From the sequence record OR670491.1: a stretch of 64,000 bases of DNA; one strand, given 5' to 3'. The notes below the pieces were generated by a model, which saw only the letters and a list, made by a program, of their open reading frames with translations, ran no database searches and had not been told where the DNA came from. The translations under genes were made by a program, and so were the position numbers. Of the stretch, positions 3,028 to 63,259 are shown one piece after another; position 1 is the first letter of the stretch, and every line of letters starts with the position of its first letter.

Positions 3028-4545
3028 ATGAACCAAAACACAGTGGACGTGAAACAATATGGGATTAACGCACAACAGTACCTATTGTCGCAGGTTTTCA
3101 GCAATCCAGATTTGTATGTTCGTTGTAAGAACATTCTAAAGCCAGAATACTTTGATAATACATTCCGTGAAAGTATTAAGTTTGTTCACGATTATAGTGC
3201 AAAGTATAGTGCATCACCTACACTAAAAGATATTGAAGTGAAAGGTGGTTATCAGTATGATGTATATGAAGTAACAGAACTTCACAAGCAATCAGTACTG
3301 GATACATGCAGTGAATTTTGCCGTCACAAAGCACTTGCATTAGCAGTTGAAAAAGGTATGGAATTAGTACACCAGAAAAAATATGGTGGTATTGAAGAAC
3401 TAATTCGTGAAGCGATGTTGGTATCAGTACAGAACGAGTTAGGTCTGGATGTATTTGAAAATCCAGAAGATACCATTCGTTCATTGAGTACTATGCAAGG
3501 TTCCTTTAAGAGTGGTTGGGAAACTCTTGATTATAAATTATTTGGTGGTTTTGGTCGTCGTGAACTTGAAATTTTCGCTGCTGCTTCCGGTGGTGGTAAG
3601 TCAGTTGTTCTACAAAACCTAGCAGTAAACTTTGCTAAAGCTGGTTTGAATGGAGCATACATTTCACTAGAACTAGCAGAAGAGTTGGTTGCAGTACGTA
3701 TCTATGGTATGATGACTGAATCTAAACTAAGTAACGTAAAACAAGATGCAACTAACATTGGGTTGCAAGTGCAGGTTGAAGGTAAAAACAGTGGTGTACT
3801 ACGTATCAAGCGTTTACCAGAATCTGTTACAACTACCGATGATATTGAAAGCTATCTTCGTGAACTACAAATTAAGCTTGAGATTAAGCTTGACTATGTT
3901 TGCGTGGACTACCTTGACTTGTTAACATCAAACCGTTTGGGTTCAAATGACCAATCGAACGCATTCGTAAAAGATAAGTTTGTATCTGAAGAATTACGTG
4001 CACTTGCAACTAAACTTGACCTAACTGTATTCACTGCATCACAGTTTAACCGTGGTGGTATTAGTGAAGATAAGAAAAGTCAAAGTCAGATTGCTGGTGG
4101 TATTTCTAAGATCTATACCGCAGATAACGTAATTTACATTGAAGCACGTAAAGAACTAGGTGAGATGTGGTTTGACTTCCAGAAAACACGTAACAGTAGT
4201 GCAGTAGGTTCTCGTTTGCGTATGTCTTATGATATGGACTCACTACGAGTTCTAGATCATGCAACTACAGTACAGCAAATGGAAATGGAAGGAAGCGGCT
4301 TTAAACACAGCGGTAACTGCCGTGTTGGTGGTGGGATGGTGTCACCCCCTAATGCTATGCAAACATTGCGTCATCAGCTTTCTAATGCGTCTAATACTAC
4401 ATCAGAAACTATTCCTGCAACCACAACACTAAATAGTGTTAGTGAGCAAGTTTCCACCAATGTGTCGGAAACTGTGAAACCACAAGAACACTCAGGTAAT
4501 GACCGTGTTAATGCTATGAAGCAATGGTTGAATCAAAGGAAATAA
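3028..4545 (+). CDS. replicative DnaB-family helicase (T4 gp41-like)
   Basis: Walker A AASGGGKS, YISLEL, VDYLDL, TASQFNR and KTRNS motifs; low-complexity C-terminal tail. Confidence 0.92.
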   Translation: MNQNTVDVKQYGINAQQYLLSQVFSNPDLYVRCKNILKPEYFDNTFRESIKFVHDYSAKYSASPTLKDIEVKGGYQYDVYEVTELHKQSVLDTCSEFCRHKALALAVEKGMELVHQKKYGGIEELIREAMLVSVQNELGLDVFENPEDTIRSLSTMQGSFKSGWETLDYKLFGGFGRRELEIFAAASGGGKSVVLQNLAVNFAKAGLNGAYISLELAEELVAVRIYGMMTESKLSNVKQDATNIGLQVQVEGKNSGVLRIKRLPESVTTTDDIESYLRELQIKLEIKLDYVCVDYLDLLTSNRLGSNDQSNAFVKDKFVSEELRALATKLDLTVFTASQFNRGGISEDKKSQSQIAGGISKIYTADNVIYIEARKELGEMWFDFQKTRNSSAVGSRLRMSYDMDSLRVLDHATTVQQMEMEGSGFKHSGNCRVGGGMVSPPNAMQTLRHQLSNASNTTSETIPATTTLNSVSEQVSTNVSETVKPQEHSGNDRVNAMKQWLNQRK

Positions 4546-7930: not shown

Positions 7931-8263
7931 ATGAGATTCAGTGATTTAACTGAAGAAGCTCCAGGAAAAGACATACGCAATATGATTACTACTATTGCGT
8001 TGTCTTTAGTATCTTCGGGTAGAGAAGAAGTTAACGTTCAGTCTTTAGTTTCTGAAATTAAAAAGAGAACCAACATTGACGTTCCTTACAACGTTTTGAT
8101 GGATATCTTAAACTCTCTACCATTTGTTCAGGATGCAAATTCTGATGTTGTTACCTTCGCAGGTAATGACTCACAGACTTCCGGTGATATGGAACAAAAT
8201 TCCGATGAACAAGTTGAAGACTGGGCTACTAAAGCTGCTGTGTCAGCTAACAAGCAAAAATAA
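7931..8263 (+). CDS. hypothetical protein
   Basis: ORF with RBS; winged-helix-like size and pattern (not confirmed). Confidence 0.65.
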   Translation: MRFSDLTEEAPGKDIRNMITTIALSLVSSGREEVNVQSLVSEIKKRTNIDVPYNVLMDILNSLPFVQDANSDVVTFAGNDSQTSGDMEQNSDEQVEDWATKAAVSANKQK

Positions 8264-8306
8264 TTTAGACAAACGAAAATACGATGCTATAATTAGGAGT
8301 ACATGG

Positions 8307-9026
8307 ATGTACATACCACCAATTGTTAGCAGATATACATATTTGGATTACAAGCGAATTGAAGGCGGCCCAGAAGGTCGCCTTTATTCAACTCCAACTG
8401 GGAATCTGCCGTCAGTAACAACAATCTTGAGTGCGACCTCTGATAACGAGGGTCTTAAAAAATGGCGAGAGTTTGTTGGAGAAGAGAAAGCTAATGAAAT
8501 AACATTAGAAGCATGTACTGTTGGAACATTCATGCATGAAAACTTAGAATTCCGTTTAGACGGTAAACCAGACCACCAAGGTGGAATGCCGATACGTGTA
8601 CTGGCTCGACGAATGGCAGATAAGATTCAGGAAGAAGCATGGCCTAAAATCAATGAAGTGTGGGGACAAGAAGTACCACTATTTTATGAAGGTTTGTGGG
8701 CTGGGACAACAGACTTAGTGGGGGTACATGACGGTATACCAACTATCATGGACTATAAGAATTCCCGTAAAATGAAAACATGGGAACATATTGAAAATTA
8801 TCGAATGCAGATTGCAGCTTATGCTCTTTCTCATAACCAAATGTTCGGGACTAATATCGAACGTGGTGTGATTTTCATCTGTGTAAGGAACGATCCTGCT
8901 AACCTTAAATATCAAGAGTTCGTTATTGAAGGACAAGACTTCAAAGACGCAGTTGATATGTGGATTGGTAGAGTTGAACAATATTATATTTTACGTGGAG
9001 AGATTGAATCAAATGGAACAGCATAA
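8307..9026 (+). CDS. PD-(D/E)XK exonuclease
   Basis: LPSVTTIL, GTFMHENLE, LWAGTTDL and MDYKNS motifs; AGGAG RBS 7 nt before ATG 8307. Confidence 0.85.
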   Translation: MYIPPIVSRYTYLDYKRIEGGPEGRLYSTPTGNLPSVTTILSATSDNEGLKKWREFVGEEKANEITLEACTVGTFMHENLEFRLDGKPDHQGGMPIRVLARRMADKIQEEAWPKINEVWGQEVPLFYEGLWAGTTDLVGVHDGIPTIMDYKNSRKMKTWEHIENYRMQIAAYALSHNQMFGTNIERGVIFICVRNDPANLKYQEFVIEGQDFKDAVDMWIGRVEQYYILRGEIESNGTA

Positions 9027-21055: not shown

Positions 21056-21250
21056 ATGACTGACAAAACCTTTTATGATCGTATTATTGAAGACAAGGGT
21101 GTGTTTGATAAAGTAATCTATGATTTGGAACTAATGATCAAAGATTCCCCTAACCCACGAATGCGTACACAGGCTGAGTTTGCAAAAACTTACTTAGTTC
21201 AAGTTCAAGCAATTTGTGAAGCGATTAAAAAACATAACGATGGTGCTTGA
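21056..21250 (+). CDS. hypothetical protein
   Basis: GGAG RBS. Confidence 0.65.
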   Translation: MTDKTFYDRIIEDKGVFDKVIYDLELMIKDSPNPRMRTQAEFAKTYLVQVQAICEAIKKHNDGA

Positions 21251-45492: not shown

Positions 45493-45921
45493 ATGAATAT
45501 CGAACAAGTAATCCGCTCTAACGCTTTCTTCTCTGCTGAATCTGGTCGTGTTATCGAAGATATCAAAATCGAAGAACTGATGATCAACGTTAAGTACAAA
45601 GAACAGAACGAAGAAATGTCCAGCAGCATCTGTGCTCTACGTGCTCCATTCCGTAGTGAAAAAGCTAAGAAGCCAGCATATGTTCTAGCGATTGCTCTTG
45701 GTTGTGTAGTGAAGAAAGCAATTGACTCCAACCAACTAAATATCAAAGTTGCTCCAATGAACGATGAAGAGAACATCAACCTGGACTTCGACGGTCAACT
45801 GTCTGAAGAAGAATTCTTCCAGCTTTCTCTGATTCATGACTTCCGTAGCATCAACTTTGACCACATTCACTTCATCGACGAAATGGTTGAATTGGTTTCT
45901 CAGTACGAAGCTGAACTGTAA
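45493..45921 (+). CDS. EExxFQxS-motif family protein
   Basis: LSEEEFFQLSLIHD near the C-terminus; highly expressed codon usage. Confidence 0.75.
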   Translation: MNIEQVIRSNAFFSAESGRVIEDIKIEELMINVKYKEQNEEMSSSICALRAPFRSEKAKKPAYVLAIALGCVVKKAIDSNQLNIKVAPMNDEENINLDFDGQLSEEEFFQLSLIHDFRSINFDHIHFIDEMVELVSQYEAEL

Positions 45922-47174: not shown

Positions 47175-47641
47175 TGAAAAGCATTCTCCAAAACTGGAAT
47201 CCAGACACAATTAGTACTGAAACTAAATCGTCTTTTGCGTTCTCTATTATTAACATTGACGTTATAGATTATCTATCTATTGATTCGATGGACGCAAAGG
47301 AATGCACACATCGTGTGTGGTATGATTATGACCAAGGCGTAGAACTGACACTTACGTATAACACAGAAGATTTGGTTCAAAGTGAACAATACAGTGTGTG
47401 CCTTGATGGTACTATTGGTATTCGAAAGCATTACTTGAATGATGATGGGAAAGTTATTTCCGAAACAATCAATATCACAGATCATGGTTTTAATGAAGAA
47501 TCTTTCTTCATGGAAAGTACTATGCAGAATTTTGGCACAATGACTTTTGAAGATTATGTACATCTTAAAATTCTATATCGCAAAGTACTGGAAGTTGTTG
47601 CCGAACTGGAAAAGGTGAACAAACATGATCAACATTCATAA
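47174..47641 (+). CDS. EExxFQxS-motif family protein
   Basis: FNEESFFMESTMQN. Confidence 0.75.
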   Translation: MKSILQNWNPDTISTETKSSFAFSIINIDVIDYLSIDSMDAKECTHRVWYDYDQGVELTLTYNTEDLVQSEQYSVCLDGTIGIRKHYLNDDGKVISETINITDHGFNEESFFMESTMQNFGTMTFEDYVHLKILYRKVLEVVAELEKVNKHDQHS

Positions 47642-48002
47642 AGAATTGGCATTATTAAAAAAAGATTTCGATGAAAATACATTAACACTATCATTAAATG
47701 CTGGTGTAATTAAAGTTGGTGTTTCCACGTCATACCTTGTTTACCGTAAGAACAGTAAAGAGGTCTTATATCATAATGAATCTGGTATAATTTGGGTGTA
47801 TGATATGGAAAAGAATGTCATCAATTACGTTACTGATTTTTATGCACATAAAACAGTTAATTTTGATGTTACTGAAGAGGAACTATTCCAACAATCTCTG
47901 ATAGAAGCTGATGTATTAATGCCAGAGGAAATTAAAATAATCACAGATGCGGTGCAGTATGTATTTGATAGTGTTCAAGAACATGAAGGTACTGAAGGAT
48001 AG
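47625..48002 (+). CDS. EExxFQxS-motif family protein
   Basis: VTEEELFQQSLIEAD. Confidence 0.75.
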   Translation: MINIHKELALLKKDFDENTLTLSLNAGVIKVGVSTSYLVYRKNSKEVLYHNESGIIWVYDMEKNVINYVTDFYAHKTVNFDVTEEELFQQSLIEADVLMPEEIKIITDAVQYVFDSVQEHEGTEG

Positions 48003-55375: not shown

Positions 55376-55648
55376 ATGAAGATTCTTGAAGTTTTACATA
55401 CTTACATGGCACAGAGTACTCTTTACATTGGTAATGAGTTCAGTCCAGATCCACTTGACATGTTAGAACGTGTTAAAGCGATTTACCCTCAACTCGCGTC
55501 AAAAGAAGCGTTCGAACGTGAGATTGTACTGAATACTGACAATAAAGTACTCGATGACCAAGTTCAACAAGATGTAATTAATCTCTTGACAAAGAACGGA
55601 TATGTAGAGTATAATCCTTGTACTGTAATCATTGACTGTGAGTTATAA
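55376..55648 (+). CDS. hypothetical protein
   Basis: C-terminal VINLLTKNGY is shared with 55916..56212. Confidence 0.7.
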   Translation: MKILEVLHTYMAQSTLYIGNEFSPDPLDMLERVKAIYPQLASKEAFEREIVLNTDNKVLDDQVQQDVINLLTKNGYVEYNPCTVIIDCEL

Positions 55649-55649
55649 T

Positions 55650-55916
55650 ATGAGTACTAAAGCTGAAATGAAAGAACGTTTGGTTCTTCTAAAAGAAGAA
55701 CGTCGTATTGTACGTCTGGATTGGGATATTCTCAATGCTAAAGATGATCAGTCCTATGCAACATGGAGCAATGAGAAGGTTCGTAACGAGCGTTCTAAAG
55801 AAGATAACAAACAGTTCATGGCATTGTCCAAACGTCTATCTTCATTGAACAGTGAGATTCGTGGCCTTCAGCGTAACATCACTGATATTCTTCTAGATGA
55901 AATGAAGGATCTCTAA
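55650..55916 (+). CDS. coiled-coil hypothetical protein
   Basis: Heptad pattern. Confidence 0.7.
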   Translation: MSTKAEMKERLVLLKEERRIVRLDWDILNAKDDQSYATWSNEKVRNERSKEDNKQFMALSKRLSSLNSEIRGLQRNITDILLDEMKDL

Positions 55917-56212
55917 TGAATAAACATGAAGTATTAGTTCTGGATGGGACATTCTTTGTCCCTACCGAAGATGCACTGAATTGTTATGACCTAATCAATA
56001 AAGTTATGGCAGCAACTAAAACATGTTGCCGTCAGACACCAGGTGAATACGAGTTCAGTCAGATGAATGGCTTTATTCGTTACCAAGAAAAAGATCATTT
56101 TGAAGTTGATAAGCAAAAAGTTATTGACATTCTGAAAAAGAACGGATATAATGAATGTATAAATAACGATACGGATTTACCAGTTGTTCGAGTTCTTTTG
56201 AAAAATACATAA
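55916..56212 (+). CDS. hypothetical protein
   Basis: C-terminal VIDILKKNGY. Confidence 0.7.
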   Translation: MNKHEVLVLDGTFFVPTEDALNCYDLINKVMAATKTCCRQTPGEYEFSQMNGFIRYQEKDHFEVDKQKVIDILKKNGYNECINNDTDLPVVRVLLKNT

Positions 56213-56219
56213 AAAACTC

Positions 56220-56247
56220 TGGACAAAACCTGAAGTACTGATATAAT
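56220..56247 (+). promoter_or_regulatory. sigma70-like promoter with AGTACTG next to -10
   Basis: TGGACA...GAAGTACTGA-TATAAT. Confidence 0.65.
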
Positions 56248-56331
56248 GTATGTCATCGGCAGATACAAAAATGCAATCCATTCCTCAATGATGAGGACTT
56301 TCATAAAAAAGAAATAAAAGGGTATTATAAA

Positions 56332-56535
56332 ATGGCTAAAGAAACTAACGCACAAGTACTAGACGTAACCGACTTCGACCGCACTGTGAACTACATCAAG
56401 TTCCAGATTTCTCAAGCTGAAGAAGCTCTGGCTGAATTCCACGGTACTGGTGCAAGGCCAATCCGCTTTGCTCATCTAATCTCTTGGAAAAAATCTCTCC
56501 AAGAAGAACTAAAACGCCTAACTCACGGCGAATAA
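56332..56535 (+). CDS. small highly expressed hypothetical protein
   Basis: Strongly biased codons; own promoter and terminator (GCCCTGTCA-TA-TGACGGGGC-TTTT). Confidence 0.75.
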   Translation: MAKETNAQVLDVTDFDRTVNYIKFQISQAEEALAEFHGTGARPIRFAHLISWKKSLQEELKRLTHGE

Positions 56536-56603
56536 GTATTAACCGTCGCCCTGTCATATGACGGGGCTTTTTAATCACAATCAAATCCTAAAGGTAAAAA
56601 TCA

Positions 56604-57080
56604 ATGGGTATCGAATATATGTTTCTCTTCTTCTGCTTAGGTACACTGGCAGTGATTACATCAGGGTTAGTACTGAACACTTTAATCAGTGGTTCGAAGT
56701 ACTTTGTTACATTCCAATTGCTCATGTCTGCGACTCAATATAACAAAACATCTGAAGAAACTATTTCTTTACTACTCGAAAAGGTTTCAGCAAATTTAGT
56801 GGTTGCGAGTTTGTCATCGACTGAATCCAGAATTGAGTTTATGGATATAAATACAAACGAAGTAGTTGCAGAGATTTTTATTGGTAACAAATATTATTTC
56901 TATGGTACATTACAAAAATACTATGGAAAAACAATGACTGAATTATCAAGAAAACGCCCAGCAATCAAAACACTGAAACGTATTATCAAGTTGGAAAAAC
57001 AACTACTAGGTGACCGCACCGAAAATAAAGAACCACCAGTACAAAATAATAAAAAGAAAAATGTTGTGGAGCTACAATAA
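56604..57080 (+). CDS. membrane-anchored hypothetical protein
   Basis: N-terminal TM. Confidence 0.65.
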   Translation: MGIEYMFLFFCLGTLAVITSGLVLNTLISGSKYFVTFQLLMSATQYNKTSEETISLLLEKVSANLVVASLSSTESRIEFMDINTNEVVAEIFIGNKYYFYGTLQKYYGKTMTELSRKRPAIKTLKRIIKLEKQLLGDRTENKEPPVQNNKKKNVVELQ

Positions 57081-57373
57081 TGACACCAGAAGAATCCAAA
57101 CGAATATTGATTGATGTTCAAGAAGGTCTACTCAATATTATGGGATTAGTAAAAGATTTACCTCAAGGTTATCAGTTTAAAGTTCGTGAAATGTTATCAT
57201 GTGCAGAGACAGTAGTTTCAATGTATAATGATATTCAGCATGGTACTATCCCTGATATCCTAACTGAAAAATCAGAGAAGATTGAAGTTTTAGAAGTACC
57301 ACCTGAAGTTAAACAAGAACCACTTCCACCACGAACTGTATTAAAAATCGAAGACTTCGATTTAGACGACTAA
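57080..57373 (+). CDS. hypothetical protein
   Basis: GGAG RBS. Confidence 0.65.
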   Translation: MTPEESKRILIDVQEGLLNIMGLVKDLPQGYQFKVREMLSCAETVVSMYNDIQHGTIPDILTEKSEKIEVLEVPPEVKQEPLPPRTVLKIEDFDLDD

Positions 57374-57583
57374 CAGGAGAAATAATGAGTAATCAAACGT
57401 GTGATTTAGTACAAAAACTTTTAGAGATTCAAGCACAAGGAAAGCAGCTTGACGAAAAACGAGCCAAGATGATTGATGACCTATGTGCTTCTATCCTAGC
57501 AGTATTTGCTGATAGCAAGAAAGATTAATCATTATTTTAAATAGCCCAGTCTTAGTACTGGGTATTTTTTTAGGTAAATTATC

Positions 57584-57970
57584 ATGAACAAAGAAGAGAT
57601 CACGAACCTTATTAAATCAATATATGAAGAGGTCCAGGACGCAAAGAATATTTGTCAACACAGAACAGGTTACTCAACCGTAGGTGAAGTAGAAACTTTG
57701 AAGCTTGCGTTATGGACACCTGACCATCTTAACTACGTGGATTGTATAATCCATCGACAAGACACAGGTGGTTATTACTTTATATCCAATTATAACGCAG
57801 ACAAACAATCTCATTTTTATGTGGAGTTTTATCCACATGCGTTTCATCTAGTACAATCCGAAGAGGATGAATTTCAAAAACTCACCACTATAGGAACTGA
57901 TGAGAAATGCATTCCCTTTGAACTCTATGAAAAGATGCAGTACATTACTAGTGTTATGATGGCATATTGA
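57584..57970 (+). CDS. EExxFQxS-motif family protein
   Basis: QSEEDEFQKLTTIG. Confidence 0.7.
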   Translation: MNKEEITNLIKSIYEEVQDAKNICQHRTGYSTVGEVETLKLALWTPDHLNYVDCIIHRQDTGGYYFISNYNADKQSHFYVEFYPHAFHLVQSEEDEFQKLTTIGTDEKCIPFELYEKMQYITSVMMAY

Positions 57971-58020
57971 CTAGTACTGAAAACTGTGCTATTCTTGTGT
58001 TTTAAATAGGAGATATTTTT

Positions 58021-58524
58021 ATGCTCATTACACATGTACCTGAAAGCATTACTGAAATTCTAAACAAAGTTAATGTTAATGAATTTGAACGAACTGTAAG
58101 AAAACATGATACTTACCACTATAAGCACAAAGATGGCGAACACCAAATAAACATAGATCTTAGTTATCAAACACTAACAATTAAAATGGTAACACGTTGG
58201 AACTTTGTTCGCAAAGACAGTATTATGCTTAATTTGGATAAAGGTATTATTAGAAAATTCTTCTCTGAATCAAATGGTATCTATCCAAACAATAATAGAA
58301 TTTTAACATATCAGTACTTAACTGATGAAGCTGTACATTTCCAGGAGAGCTTAATTTGTGATAACAAGTACTTTCCTAGTATGTCTGATGTTTTGAAATT
58401 AAAAGAACTATATGACTATTACTATAATGATACTAACCTTTGGGATGAAGAAATGGAAAAACGTCAAAGGGAACGTAACAAAAATAAAGTCTGGACTGGT
58501 TCACATTGGATGACACGAAAATGA
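58021..58524 (+). CDS. EExxFQxS-motif family protein
   Basis: LTDEAVHFQESLICD. Confidence 0.7.
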   Translation: MLITHVPESITEILNKVNVNEFERTVRKHDTYHYKHKDGEHQINIDLSYQTLTIKMVTRWNFVRKDSIMLNLDKGIIRKFFSESNGIYPNNNRILTYQYLTDEAVHFQESLICDNKYFPSMSDVLKLKELYDYYYNDTNLWDEEMEKRQRERNKNKVWTGSHWMTRK

Positions 58525-58934
58525 ATCAATGCTACGAAATTAATGTAACAAAACCTGAAACAAGCACTTTGGAAGCGTTGGAAGACACATTAACAGTACT
58601 ACAATCTCCTGACAAAGAAACATCATTAGTAACCATTGAATACAAGGATTGTACGGTTGATGCTGGGAAACATCCAGAGTGGAAAGCACACCAATATTAC
58701 TCAATATACATTCGCTATGAAAATTTCATAACTGATATGGCCTACGCAGAGGACTATCTGTTACTGGAGAATCATTTTGTATTCAAACAAAAAGAATACA
58801 TGTATTGTACTCCTGAATATCTCGAAGAAGAAGAATTTCAGTATTCTTTGGTGCAGGATGAAGTTGAGTACAACAAAGTATTAGTACTGTCAAAAATACA
58901 TAAAATACTAAAGGATAAATATGTCACACAGTGA
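58521..58934 (+). CDS. EExxFQxS-motif family protein
   Basis: YLEEEEFQYSLVQD; ATGA-coupled start. Confidence 0.7.
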   Translation: MNQCYEINVTKPETSTLEALEDTLTVLQSPDKETSLVTIEYKDCTVDAGKHPEWKAHQYYSIYIRYENFITDMAYAEDYLLLENHFVFKQKEYMYCTPEYLEEEEFQYSLVQDEVEYNKVLVLSKIHKILKDKYVTQ

Positions 58935-59091
58935 ATGGATGTACTTTATGAAACAAAAATATGCACCGCCTTTAAACGAAAGTATTAGCTACATTCACTG
59001 GAATGTAATCAAAAACCCTTCGTTATATAAACGATATTTCGTAGAACCAAATACTGGTTGGTTTTTAATGGAACTTATTTTTAGGGATTAA
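58921..59091 (+). CDS. MTHEEW-family micro-protein (56 aa)
   Basis: Hand-translated MSHSEWMYFMKQKY...WFLMELIFRD. Confidence 0.65.
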   Translation: MSHSEWMYFMKQKYAPPLNESISYIHWNVIKNPSLYKRYFVEPNTGWFLMELIFRD

Positions 59092-59093
59092 TC

Positions 59094-59255
59094 ATGACAC
59101 ATGAAATTTGGTTAAACTTAATGGCACACGATTTAAAACGAAGTATTAAACACTGGGATCTATATCTGATGATGACTATCAATTCACCTGTGTACTATAA
59201 ATCTGTACTAGATGCTTCGGCCCTTACTTTCATTGCAATTTCTATGAGTAGATAA
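59094..59255 (+). CDS. MTHEEW-family micro-protein (53 aa)
   Basis: MTHEIWLNLM...FIAISMSR. Confidence 0.65.
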   Translation: MTHEIWLNLMAHDLKRSIKHWDLYLMMTINSPVYYKSVLDASALTFIAISMSR

Positions 59256-59256
59256 T

Positions 59257-59421
59257 ATGTCATACGATGAATGGTTTGGTATGTGTCTCAAGAGATATTA
59301 CGGAGACATATACTATTTTGAGAATTTCATTTATAATTGTTTACGAAATAAAGATGAATACTATTCTAATATAGTTGTAAATGACGATTTCAGTACTTAC
59401 ATAGGTATATGTTTATCATGA
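59257..59421 (+). CDS. MTHEEW-family micro-protein (54 aa)
   Basis: MSYDEWFGM...YIGICLS. Confidence 0.65.
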   Translation: MSYDEWFGMCLKRYYGDIYYFENFIYNCLRNKDEYYSNIVVNDDFSTYIGICLS

Positions 59422-59429
59422 GGTAACTA

Positions 59430-59615
59430 ATGACATATCAAGACTGGATTGAACGAATGGACAGAATCTTTGCCAATGACGTTTTTTATTTCAGAACAGG
59501 GGGTCTGGATAAAAGCATCAAAGACGATACTCTGTTTACCAGATGTATCATTGACTATCTGGATTGTTATGGTACAATGTATGGTATTGCCCGTACTACG
59601 GATAAAGATGAATGA
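59430..59615 (+). CDS. MTHEEW-family micro-protein (61 aa)
   Basis: MTYQDWIERM; GAGG RBS. Confidence 0.7.
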   Translation: MTYQDWIERMDRIFANDVFYFRTGGLDKSIKDDTLFTRCIIDYLDCYGTMYGIARTTDKDE

Positions 59616-59785
59616 CACATAAAGAATGGTTGGTACAAACTAAACACTCGGTTATACCAGGTATGAAATTTTGGAATGAACAGTTGATGCACTTCGTAAG
59701 TAATAAAGTGTATTACGATGCATTCTTTGGAAAACATGCTACAATTGAGGTTCATGTGTATTATGCTATTGCATTTAGTGATTAA
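59612..59785 (+). CDS. MTHEEW-family micro-protein (57 aa)
   Basis: MTHKEWLVQ; ATGA overlap. Confidence 0.65.
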   Translation: MTHKEWLVQTKHSVIPGMKFWNEQLMHFVSNKVYYDAFFGKHATIEVHVYYAIAFSD

Positions 59786-59788
59786 TTT

Positions 59789-59953
59789 ATGAAATATGAC
59801 CATTTAAAATACTATGCTGATAGAATAAATTATTATCCCTTTTATATAAGAAGCTTAGATGCATTAATATCAAAAAAAGTTGTATATAAACGATCTCAAG
59901 CTGATCTAACCAATATAGCATTCATTCTTGCAGTACTGTCTAAAATGGGATAA
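59789..59953 (+). CDS. divergent micro-protein (54 aa), probably the same family
   Basis: MKYDHL...VY...IAFILAVLSKMG; same length and position in the array but lacks Trp6. Confidence 0.5.
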   Translation: MKYDHLKYYADRINYYPFYIRSLDALISKKVVYKRSQADLTNIAFILAVLSKMG

Positions 59954-59978
59954 TGTTAAATTAGGATGAATACAAAAT

Positions 59979-60170
59979 ATGACACATGAACAATGGATGA
60001 AACAATTCAGTGAGGATTATAAAGCTGCCATATCCTTTTATGGAAAAAGATTCAACTATCTTTTTTGTAGTGAATATCATTATAGAAATATAGTTCTTTA
60101 TGAACAAACAGAAGGTGAAAAAGCTGCCGACCATTGGGTTGTAATGTACATCCTTGCTATGTCAAAATAA
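59979..60170 (+). CDS. MTHEEW-family micro-protein (63 aa)
   Basis: MTHEQWMKQF...YILAMSK. Confidence 0.7.
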   Translation: MTHEQWMKQFSEDYKAAISFYGKRFNYLFCSEYHYRNIVLYEQTEGEKAADHWVVMYILAMSK

Positions 60171-60281
60171 CACAAAAAATATTTTAATAAATATATAGAC
60201 AATAGCGTTATATGAGATATAATGTTTGTCGTGAAGGAGAAAAGCATGATCGATGAATTCGACGGCTTTTAAATAATACAT

Positions 60282-60455
<174 letters not shown>

Positions 60456-60459
60456 TTTT

Positions 60460-60849
60460 ATGCATAGTACTGATGTGATATTACACGGAGTGAGATGTAC
60501 AAATTTACTTTTGGTATCATATATACCAGCACGTGTAAATCGCCAAGACATGGTATATCCAACTTCTAATACAGCAGTGCTAAAAGATGATACACAACTC
60601 GCCTACCGTTATACATTCGCTTATTCACCATATAGTGCTTTGCATGTTATCTTCAAAGAAGATGGTACAGTACAAGTGAAATATGTTGATAATGATCAGT
60701 TTAACGATGCTATCATCTCCAACTTCACTATACATGATACTGAAGAAGAGTTATTCATGAAAAGTACTATACAAAATGATTTTGGTATAGGCACTAAAGA
60801 AATTGAAACATTTCGCTTGATCTGGGATGAGTATTTTGGTACAATTTAG
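60460..60849 (+). CDS. EExxFQxS-motif family protein
   Basis: DTEEELFMKSTIQND. Confidence 0.75.
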   Translation: MHSTDVILHGVRCTNLLLVSYIPARVNRQDMVYPTSNTAVLKDDTQLAYRYTFAYSPYSALHVIFKEDGTVQVKYVDNDQFNDAIISNFTIHDTEEELFMKSTIQNDFGIGTKEIETFRLIWDEYFGTI

Positions 60850-61589: not shown

Positions 61590-61671
<82 letters not shown>

Positions 61672-61692
61672 ATTTTAATTTAAGGTGTATCC

Positions 61693-61857
61693 ATGACGCA
61701 TGAAGAATGGATGAATGATATTAATTTTAGATATTCGGGTATCGGTAGTTGGCGAAAATATCATTGGGAAATTATATCAGACCCAGCAGAATACGATAAA
61801 CTTATAAACCATGAAGTATATCCGTGGTTCTTTATTGAAATAATGGTACGAATATGA
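61693..61857 (+). CDS. MTHEEW-family micro-protein (54 aa)
   Basis: MTHEEWMNDINFRYSGIGSW...FFIEIMVRI; AAGGTG RBS. Confidence 0.7.
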   Translation: MTHEEWMNDINFRYSGIGSWRKYHWEIISDPAEYDKLINHEVYPWFFIEIMVRI

Positions 61858-62018
61858 CGCATGAAGAATGGATGAATGACATTAATTTTAGATATTCGGG
61901 TTTCGGTAAATGGCTAAAGTATCATTGGGAATTTATTACTGATCCTCAAATGTACGATAAACTTATAAATGATCAAGCATATGAAATTTACTTATTTGAA
62001 ATACTGGTCAGAACATGA
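61854..62018 (+). CDS. MTHEEW-family micro-protein (54 aa), near-duplicate of the previous
   Basis: MTHEEWMNDINFRYSGFGKW...YLFEILVRT. Confidence 0.7.
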   Translation: MTHEEWMNDINFRYSGFGKWLKYHWEFITDPQMYDKLINDQAYEIYLFEILVRT

Positions 62019-62179
62019 CGCATGAAGAATGGATGAGAAAACAAAAGCTAACATGGAATCCTTATTGTTACCAGTTAGACCCAAGAATGTGGGATGTGAT
62101 ACGTATTAAATGTATGTACAAATCATTTCTTGGTGATATAATGGATGTTGAAGTACTGATGAATTTAGTACATCGATAA
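62015..62179 (+). CDS. MTHEEW-family micro-protein (54 aa)
   Basis: MTHEEWMRKQKLTW...VLMNLVHR. Confidence 0.7.
   Translation: MTHEEWMRKQKLTWNPYCYQLDPRMWDVIRIKCMYKSFLGDIMDVEVLMNLVHR

Positions 62180-62209: not shown

Positions 62210-62571
<362 letters not shown>

Positions 62572-62575
<4 letters not shown>

Positions 62576-62757: not shown

Positions 62758-63259
<502 letters not shown>

Follow-up and report, generated by a model that had tools for sequence, protein, structure and literature searches.

Evidence for a tRNA-associated family of four-helix micro-proteins with birth-and-death turnover in Asteriusvirus jumbo coliphages

The internal proteins of T4-type phages are packaged into the virion and carry a shared N-terminal capsid-targeting peptide, which the prohead protease cuts off at a defined motif, in front of variable bodies. 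In T-even phages, small anti-defence genes and tRNA loci change their copy number, as described for tifA, which acts against ToxIN (PMC9391042), and for SegB-driven amplification (PMC13096335), and the hyperplastic regions of T4-type phages undergo modular shuffling mediated by PeSL, i.e., by cassettes of an intergenic promoter and a stem-loop (PMC2839356, PMC4122927). Multigene families and "genomic accordions" of large DNA viruses have been reviewed (PMC13359090), and tandem duplication has been reported in the phages phAPEC6 and 121Q (PMC7247149). In this study we analysed a 64-kb stretch of DNA (the window), which matches Escherichia phage vB_EcoM_JNE01 (OR670491.1, Asteriusvirus, 355,583 bp) with 100% identity; window base 1 is record base 186001, and the window corresponds to OR670491.1 positions 186001-250000. 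It carries a head-to-tail array of seven micro-genes (m1-m7) and, separated from it by three tRNA genes, a group of three more (m8-m10). We consider it very probable that they belong to a real multigene family of four-helix micro-proteins, which turns over by birth and death in an early-type, tRNA-associated region. The ten open reading frames (ORFs), all given in window coordinates, are the following.

58921-59091, + strand: m1, 56 amino acids, MSHSEW start, subfamily A, annotated as WOL22911.1
59094-59255, + strand: m2, 53 amino acids, MTHEIW start, subfamily A
59257-59421, + strand: m3, 54 amino acids, MSYDEW start, subfamily B (DIYYF...DFSTY type)
59430-59615, + strand: m4, 61 amino acids, MTYQDW start, subfamily B
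59612-59785, + strand: m5, 57 amino acids, MTHKEW start, subfamily A, with an ATGA overlap (4 nt) with the m4 stop
59789-59953, + strand: m6, 54 amino acids, MKYDHL start without Trp6, subfamily C, unannotated in the source record
59979-60170, + strand: m7, 63 amino acids, MTHEQW start, subfamily A, the last gene ahead of tRNA-Leu
61693-61857, + strand: m8, 54 amino acids, MTHEEWM start, subfamily A
61854-62018, + strand: m9, 54 amino acids, subfamily A, with an ATGA overlap with m8
62015-62179, + strand: m10, 54 amino acids, subfamily A, its first seven codons being those of m8 and m9

All seven genes of the first array start with ATG; the distances from start to start are 173, 163, 173, 182, 177 and 190 nt, and the gaps or overlaps between neighbours amount to +2, +1, +8, -4, +3 and +25 nt. 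An earlier reading of this DNA made by a model from the letters alone (hereafter the sequence-only reading) had proposed seven head-to-tail ORFs at these positions, and this was confirmed, with a spacing of 163-190 nt and a packing of -4 to +25 nt. Translation also bore out the M(T/S)(H/Y)xxW start that it had reported for six of the seven and the divergent MKYDHL, lacking Trp6, of m6. The size range it gave, 54-63 amino acids, has to be corrected to 53-63, and the family that it took to have seven members has at least ten in the window, m8-m10 (61693-62179) having been left off its list. It had also remarked that the ORF track missed most members, and indeed only two of the seven reach 60 amino acids; most of m1-m7 were absent from the track because the default cut-off of the lister is 60 amino acids. 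The GenBank record OR670491.1 already lists six of the seven as hypothetical proteins, and only m6 (59789-59953) lacks an annotation. When ORFs starting with M(T/S)(H/Y)xxW were sought on both strands of the window, only six of m1-m7 together with m8, m9 and m10 were found, and the degenerate 18-nt start pattern had 5 matches versus 0.07 expected by chance.

At the DNA level the array is not a tandem repeat. Tandem Repeats Finder detected the m8/m9 pair only (61692-62036, period 161, 81% matches), and this is the single DNA-level repeat of the region. Identity between paralogues within JNE01 is at most 33%, except for m8 and m9, which are 69% identical and appear to be the youngest duplication in the family. 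The body of m10 is only about 20% identical to that of m8, despite their common first seven codons.

The locus resembles the segmental amplifications of T-even phages in that short accessory genes stand head to tail in an early region with tRNA genes and many homing endonucleases, and in that the copy number differs between close relatives (presence of m8 and m9; seven units versus four upstream). However, T-even amplification produces recent near-identical repeats that raise dosage, whereas the units described here are old paralogues, each of them conserved in itself, and only m8/m9 resemble a young duplication of the T-even type. As in PeSL-mediated shuffling, mosaic blocks start and end at short conserved motifs flanking small accessory genes; unlike in PeSL, the motifs at the junctions are the 5' and 3' coding ends of the genes, and no promoter-like or terminator-like site was detected between the m1-m7 units. 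The locus of the T4 internal proteins is comparable in having a short conserved N-terminus on divergent small proteins encoded side by side, with a content that varies between relatives, but the genes of JNE01 are situated in the region of replication and tRNA genes, not next to head genes, and their conserved start is part of the predicted fold. Finally, as a lineage-specific array of paralogues that grows and shrinks in a large viral genome, the locus recalls the genomic accordions, from which it differs in that its units are micro-proteins of about 55 amino acids. Tandem paralogue families in jumbo phages being already known, this family is another example of a known phenomenon. At the same time, we found no paper on the family itself or on its unity, fold, variable arrays or junction pattern; the proteins are known only as hypothetical proteins and through two PHROGs.

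Several observations indicate that the short frames are genes. Phage Turkey5 and eight metagenome contigs, the latter taken from independent samples, keep all seven frames of m1-m7 intact (9/9), with ratios of non-synonymous to synonymous polymorphism (pN/pS) of 0-0.27; by gene, the values were 0.26 for m2, 0.26 for m4 (5 variants) and 0.27 for m7, and m6 was nucleotide-identical in all 10 sequences (JNE01 and the nine others). Between JNE01 and Turkey5 the ten genes differ by 15 synonymous and 11 non-synonymous changes (pN/pS 0.16), and orthologue groups over eight genomes gave pN/pS values of 0.3-0.5. The sequence-only reading had named stop codons accumulating in relatives as what would refute it; none was seen in the nine further sequences, in which the frames remain intact. 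In addition, Shine-Dalgarno pairing upstream of 44 family starts, evaluated with the 9-nt anti-Shine-Dalgarno of E. coli 16S rRNA, was stronger than at random ATG triplets (p = 2.6e-10). The strongest Shine-Dalgarno match of the array belongs to m4 (GAGG upstream). In contrast, m6 has almost none and starts 3 nt past the m5 stop, and therefore its translation may depend on re-initiation. Taken together, m1-m10 can be regarded, on the evidence of their sequences, as genuine protein-coding genes of a lineage-specific family.

Neither ARAGORN nor Rfam detected an RNA gene within 58921-60170. In the record of Turkey5 (PQ471516.1) a 119-nt "tRNA-Leu" is annotated inside the m6 ORF (locus 3331-3449, equal to window 59830-59948). 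A tRNA under m6 was ruled out, as neither of the two programs calls one in the identical sequence, and this annotation is probably an error that hides a conserved gene.

The relatedness of the ten proteins was evaluated by several profile methods. Two PHROGs were the only library families with a match: phrog_10970 (unknown function) matched m1 (E 3e-12), m8 (2.4e-27), m9 (8e-25) and m10 (4e-19), and phrog_31562 (unknown function) matched m3 (E 1.7e-11); the scores of m4, m5 and m7 were weak (0.04-0.2) and below threshold, and m2 and m6 matched neither of the two. Leave-one-out profile hidden Markov models, tested on all 187 small ORFs that the window contains, recovered m1, m2, m5, m7, m8, m9 and m10 at E 1e-6 to 1e-17 (m1 2.8e-8, m2 1.6e-8, m5 3.9e-8, m7 8.2e-7), and m3, m4 and m6 were recovered weakly (E 0.006-0.05). 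Once relatives were added, three subfamilies could be distinguished: A (m1, m2, m5 and m7-m10), B (m3 and m4) and C (m6). In hhalign comparisons subfamily B aligned with A over the full length with 97.4% probability (E 1.3e-11), and subfamily C aligned with A over 32 columns with 75% probability (E 2.5e-5). The m3 protein is 44% identical to that of a PBECO4 gene of 61 amino acids. Orthologues of m6 are gp117 of 121Q (98%) and genes in the metagenomic contigs L010 (96%), L012 (81%) and L008 (49%), and its position inside the arrays is fixed in five lineages. It is partly on this position that the homology of m6 to the rest of the family, which we regard as probable, is based. The profile comparisons thus support a single superfamily comprising all ten ORFs of the window, strongly for nine of them and moderately for m6. 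By profile-profile comparison and array position, two PHROGs kept apart in the library and several singletons are joined here into that one superfamily.

The fold was predicted by AlphaFold2 from the family alignment. For m5 the model has four helices (residues 3-13, 15-30, 32-39 and 47-55) with a mean predicted local distance difference test score (pLDDT) of 84.9, and for m8 also four (3-13, 22-28, 31-38 and 43-52) with a pLDDT of 71.5; within the predicted fold, confidence is highest for the N-terminal helix. In an alignment of 48 members the columns of low entropy hold hydrophobic or aromatic residues and occur along the entire length (W6 and the residue after it, an aromatic residue at about 14, I/V at about 18, W/F/Y at about 21, I at about 30, Y at about 35, and a C-terminal run of hydrophobic-Ala-hydrophobic), and the positions between them are highly variable. 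The members have isoelectric points of 4.2-9.6, a mean aromatic content of 18% and a mostly negative grand average of hydropathy (GRAVY). Thus, the family is predicted to be a soluble all-alpha mini-domain of about 55 residues and four helices. Membrane peptides were ruled out, since the predicted helices have no more than 16 residues and GRAVY is mostly negative.

No relative of the family was found in Pfam, NCBIfam or PADLOC, nor among PDB sequences, PDB folds or BFVD folds. Foldseek searches with the m5 and m8 models against the PDB, and with one model against BFVD, returned nothing with E below 2, and the sequence-profile search of the PDB nothing below E 0.5; a single weak PADLOC match of m7 (0.01) was treated as noise.

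Conservation in the family peaks in the first 6-7 residues, M1 being invariant, T2 present in 75% and W6 in 81% of the 48 members. The pattern M-(S/T)-x-x-(E/D)-W is that of a helix N-cap box with a hydrophobic staple. Hence we infer that the conserved start is a structural helix cap with a core tryptophan and not a targeting tag. The description of the proteins in the sequence-only reading as a conserved start followed by a hypervariable body holds in so far as the positions outside the core, and the charge, are variable; it fails in that conservation runs over the full length and not over the start only.

The family was next followed through other genomes. A tblastn search with m8 retrieved 36 phage records, all of them Asteriusvirus-type coliphages and Salmonella phages, with identities of 85-100% in 34 of the records and 70-72% in the two others. 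When 1.84 billion representative proteins were searched exhaustively with the profile, 23 hits were obtained, 20 of which are proteins of 43-64 amino acids with the same start; the remaining three, long repeat proteins that match one helix, were rejected as spurious. A word-indexed search with the 48-member alignment found 9 proteins and is unfit as a census. In IMG/VR, the m8-based search found 121Q only, and a scan with the degenerate 18-nt start pattern gave scattered single matches among those listed, which we judged to be due to chance. According to these searches, the range of the family is limited to Asteriusvirus jumbo coliphages plus a few relatives from metagenomes.

Array content differs widely among these genomes. 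PBECO4, ELP-22, JP4 and SD-15 have four members upstream and two downstream (6 in total), JNE01 and Turkey5 have seven and three (10), 121Q has seven intact members, and the metagenomic contigs L008, L012 and L010 carry about 20 contiguous units, 15 and 14, respectively. Comparison of the upstream arrays alone gives seven units in JNE01 and four in the PBECO4-type phages. Both m8 and m9 are present in JNE01 and 121Q, only an m8-like gene in PBECO4 and SD-15, and only an m9-like gene in ELP-22. In 121Q the m5 homologue (genes 115 and 116, locus 4016-4189) is interrupted by a single internal stop, without a frameshift, and appears in the annotation as two tiny ORFs; the m6 homologue beside the broken m5 is intact, with one in-frame codon missing. 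For most JNE01 members the closest counterpart in other arrays is about 30-45% identical, and in PBECO4-type phages there is no orthologue closer than about 40%. The flank of the L008 array is syntenic with window 55376-58524 at an amino-acid identity of 28-70%, and L008 therefore comes from a more distant relative. Given that the paralogues are at most 33% identical and that their counterparts elsewhere are distant, the diversity of the arrays is old. A comparison of array content among related phages, suggested in the sequence-only reading, thus revealed that the number and identity of units differ by gain, loss, decay and exchange, but the library is hardly an "expanding" one, as that reading had it: the paralogues are old (at most 33% identity) and the orthologues are under purifying selection. 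The pattern is that of birth and death of whole units.

The borders of the blocks shared between arrays were found at the ends of the genes themselves. JNE01 and 121Q are 94% identical over a block that opens with the first base of m5 and closes with the final base of the 18-nt start motif of m7; the flanks of this block are 58% identical in the 50 nt before it and 36% in the 44 nt after it. JNE01 and L010 are 91% identical from the last 24 nt of m5, which are its conserved C-terminal coding end, to the start motif of m7, with flanks of 38% before and 45% after. The right-hand end is therefore common to both blocks and is the 18-nt start motif of m7. This motif is nearly identical among units because of protein conservation and AT-rich codon choice. 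From these two independent comparisons it would appear that the conserved 5' and 3' ends of the units provide the homology at which units have been exchanged, duplicated and lost.

The array belongs to a long run of co-directional genes. Those upstream of it, on the same strand, encode primase, ribonucleotide reductase, RNase H, helicase and gyrase B. Sigma-70 matches of at least 11/12 number 27 on the + strand of the window (eight of them perfect) and 0 on the - strand, versus about 2 expected; examples on the + strand are those at 21247, 38198, 39411, 44395, 46691, 53749, 55586 and 56124. Such a density looks like the signature of early-type transcription by the host polymerase, and the entire window has the appearance of an early block. 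The promoters of at least 11/12 nearest to the array lie at 56124 and 56220 upstream of it and at 60196 just past m7. The main arrays of JNE01, L008, L010 and L012 all end at tRNA-Leu(UAA). The elements bordering the array of JNE01 are as follows.

57544-57563, + strand: terminator-like hairpin with a T-run, 20 nt ahead of the ORF at 57584, the upstream bound of the probable transcription unit
57584-58934, + strand: three co-directional ORFs of 128, 167 and 137-142 amino acids directly upstream, the last overlapping m1 by 14 nt
60196-60223, + strand: sigma-70-like promoter (11/12) between the end of the array and tRNA-Leu
60282-60366, + strand: tRNA-Leu(UAA), following m7

The three ORFs at 57584-58934 and the array are probably in one transcription unit, and m8-m10 probably share a transcript with tRNA-Ser.

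The best explanation of the whole, in our opinion, is an early-region, birth-and-death family of small binding proteins, which might serve the takeover of the host or anti-defence, and to this explanation we assign a probability of roughly one half. According to this explanation the genes would be transcribed early by the RNA polymerase of the host, and their translation would be coupled along the array; every protein would be a binding module in its own right, with a variable surface for a different partner, most likely a host protein, and the array would be a repertoire rather than a dosage device. The functional part, a repertoire of small binding modules for different host proteins, possibly defence proteins, is proposed tentatively, by analogy and from the context, and falls somewhat short of being probable. 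An anti-defence function is plausible by context; general libraries (no dedicated anti-defence library was included) revealed no sequence or fold homology to known anti-defence proteins. It is unlikely that the repertoire is one of cassettes in which each unit neutralises a different host or defence factor and the coding termini double as recombination sites at which co-infecting jumbo phages could swap, gain or lose units.

Several points weigh against the early binding-protein explanation. The terminator-like hairpins at 56548 and 57544 stand between the upstream promoters (56124 and 56220) and the array, and between the hairpin at 57544 and m1 there is no sigma-70 match of at least 11/12, only matches of 10/12 or less; with the hairpins in between and only weak matches near m1, early expression of m1-m7 is therefore a matter of deduction. 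The literature searched holds no transcriptome or expression data for any Asteriusvirus. No similarity to a characterised protein was found in Pfam, NCBIfam, the PHROGs of known function, PADLOC or PDB/BFVD. Positive selection was not demonstrated, and the identity of m6 in 10 sequences and the high conservation of m8 fit a fixed housekeeping partner equally as well as an arms race. The surface exposure of the variable positions is deduced from the helix pattern. Moreover, the census of JNE01 members covers record positions 186001-300000 (114 of 355 kb), where only the ten members were found.

The main rival is a housekeeping or regulatory role tied to the tRNA region, in which the proteins would be small subunits or regulators of phage or host transcription, translation or tRNA handling, perhaps forming hetero-oligomers, and the variation in copy number would be mostly neutral. 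In each lineage seen the arrays are associated with tRNA genes, the genes are under purifying selection with some members highly conserved, and the probable co-transcription of m8-m10 with tRNA-Ser points in the same direction. However, a copy number that ranges from 6 to about 20, the scarcity of close orthologues in PBECO4-type phages and the decayed unit in 121Q are unlike essential machinery, and the domain-library searches revealed no nucleic-acid-binding or enzymatic signature. We consider such a role rather unlikely.

The units could also be selfish or nearly neutral cassettes that spread and persist through easy recombination of their conserved ends within a hyperplastic region and are of little use to the phage. 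The exchanged blocks do end at unit termini, the array content is highly variable, and homing endonuclease genes are found near the arrays in JNE01, JP4 and L008. Nevertheless, pN/pS was well below 1 in every comparison, the hydrophobic core and the predicted fold have been kept at paralogue identities of no more than 33%, and the frames were intact in 9/9 further sequences, and we consider this alternative improbable.

The sequence-only reading had regarded the conserved N-terminus as a common address or docking helix, and we accordingly considered a peptide of the address or docking type that brings variable cargo to a single destination, be it the capsid, with injection, or a docking site of the host. 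The conservation of the first 6-7 residues speaks for it, as does the case of m8, m9 and m10, whose first seven codons are common and of which m10 has a body so different from that of m8. But conserved hydrophobic columns extend through all four predicted helices, the N-terminal helix being the most confident of them, the start motif would be a textbook N-cap box with a hydrophobic staple, and the m6 subfamily lacks the motif yet keeps its place in the array. Furthermore, none of the six phAPEC6 homologues (gp094c-096c and gp099c-101c) is among the 62 virion proteins identified by mass spectrometry, in which a protein of 4.7 kDa was detected (PMC7247149). Packaged internal proteins were ruled out on the basis of this virion proteome, with the reservation that absence from the virion is evidence and not proof, as small proteins can escape mass spectrometry. 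An address function of the start is thus very improbable. Lastly, chance open frames in AT-rich DNA or cover for a non-coding RNA, to which the shortness of the ORFs and, for m6, the missing annotation, the weak Shine-Dalgarno and the "tRNA-Leu" overlay in Turkey5 might point, can be dismissed as practically negligible in view of the family statistics, frame conservation, pN/pS, Shine-Dalgarno enrichment, confident fold prediction and lack of ARAGORN and Rfam calls inside 58921-60170.

Some features of the surrounding DNA deserve mention. A second paralogous family, mostly of about 120-140 amino acids (one member has 167), is interleaved with the micro-protein arrays, and its members in the window are listed here.

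45493-45921: second-family member
47625-48002: second-family member
57584-57970, + strand: second-family member
58021-58524, + strand: second-family member
58521-58934, + strand: second-family member
60460-60849: second-family member
62210-62575: second-family member
62758-63129: second-family member

These proteins carry a C-terminal motif, acidic-x-F-Q/M-x-S/L-T/L-V/I, at residues of about 86-107; they matched only PHROGs of unknown function and no Pfam domain. Some pairs located further upstream are significantly similar (46746/48006, E 2e-8). No aca-like helix-turn-helix regulator was recognised near the arrays, none of the nine neighbouring ORFs having a Pfam domain. Right after tRNA-Ser(UGA), at 61590-61668 on the + strand, Rfam reports a tRNA-like match (33.3 bits versus a gathering threshold of 29) that ARAGORN does not call, and this element may be a degenerate or unusual tRNA. 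At 63165-63256 (+ strand) ARAGORN finds a tRNA-Ser with the uncommon anticodon ACT (ACU in RNA), which is also present in 121Q, L010 and L012.

In three lineages, genes for HNH homing endonucleases lie within a few kilobases of the arrays and tRNA genes, which recalls the association of SegB with tRNA genes in T-even phages. Their positions are given below.

JNE01 record 251560-252084: HNH gene, 1.6 kb past the end of the window
JP4 locus 7935-8459: HNH gene
L008 9935-10534: HNH gene

The tRNA region of JNE01 is followed by about 100 consecutive genes on the + strand (record 252383-293668), mostly of 60-170 amino acids and nearly all hypothetical. Many of them encode about 140-150 amino acids, a similarity in size that suggests additional families of paralogues.

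For the majority of jumbo phage genes no function is known, and micro-proteins of fewer than 60 residues often go unannotated. The present case demonstrates that a run of micro-ORFs can be validated from sequence alone: the fold is confidently predicted and has no known relative, and the turnover, unit by unit, is documented, its junctions lying at the ends of the genes themselves. If the members are not binders, this would be one more lineage-specific paralogue family. If they do bind specific targets, the arrays, with 5 to about 20 units, would represent a compact natural inhibitor library and a clear example of the diversification of accessory genes in large phages. Should each unit in fact neutralise a different host or defence factor, the family would be the phage counterpart of a diversified immune-evasion family, built of the smallest stand-alone domains.

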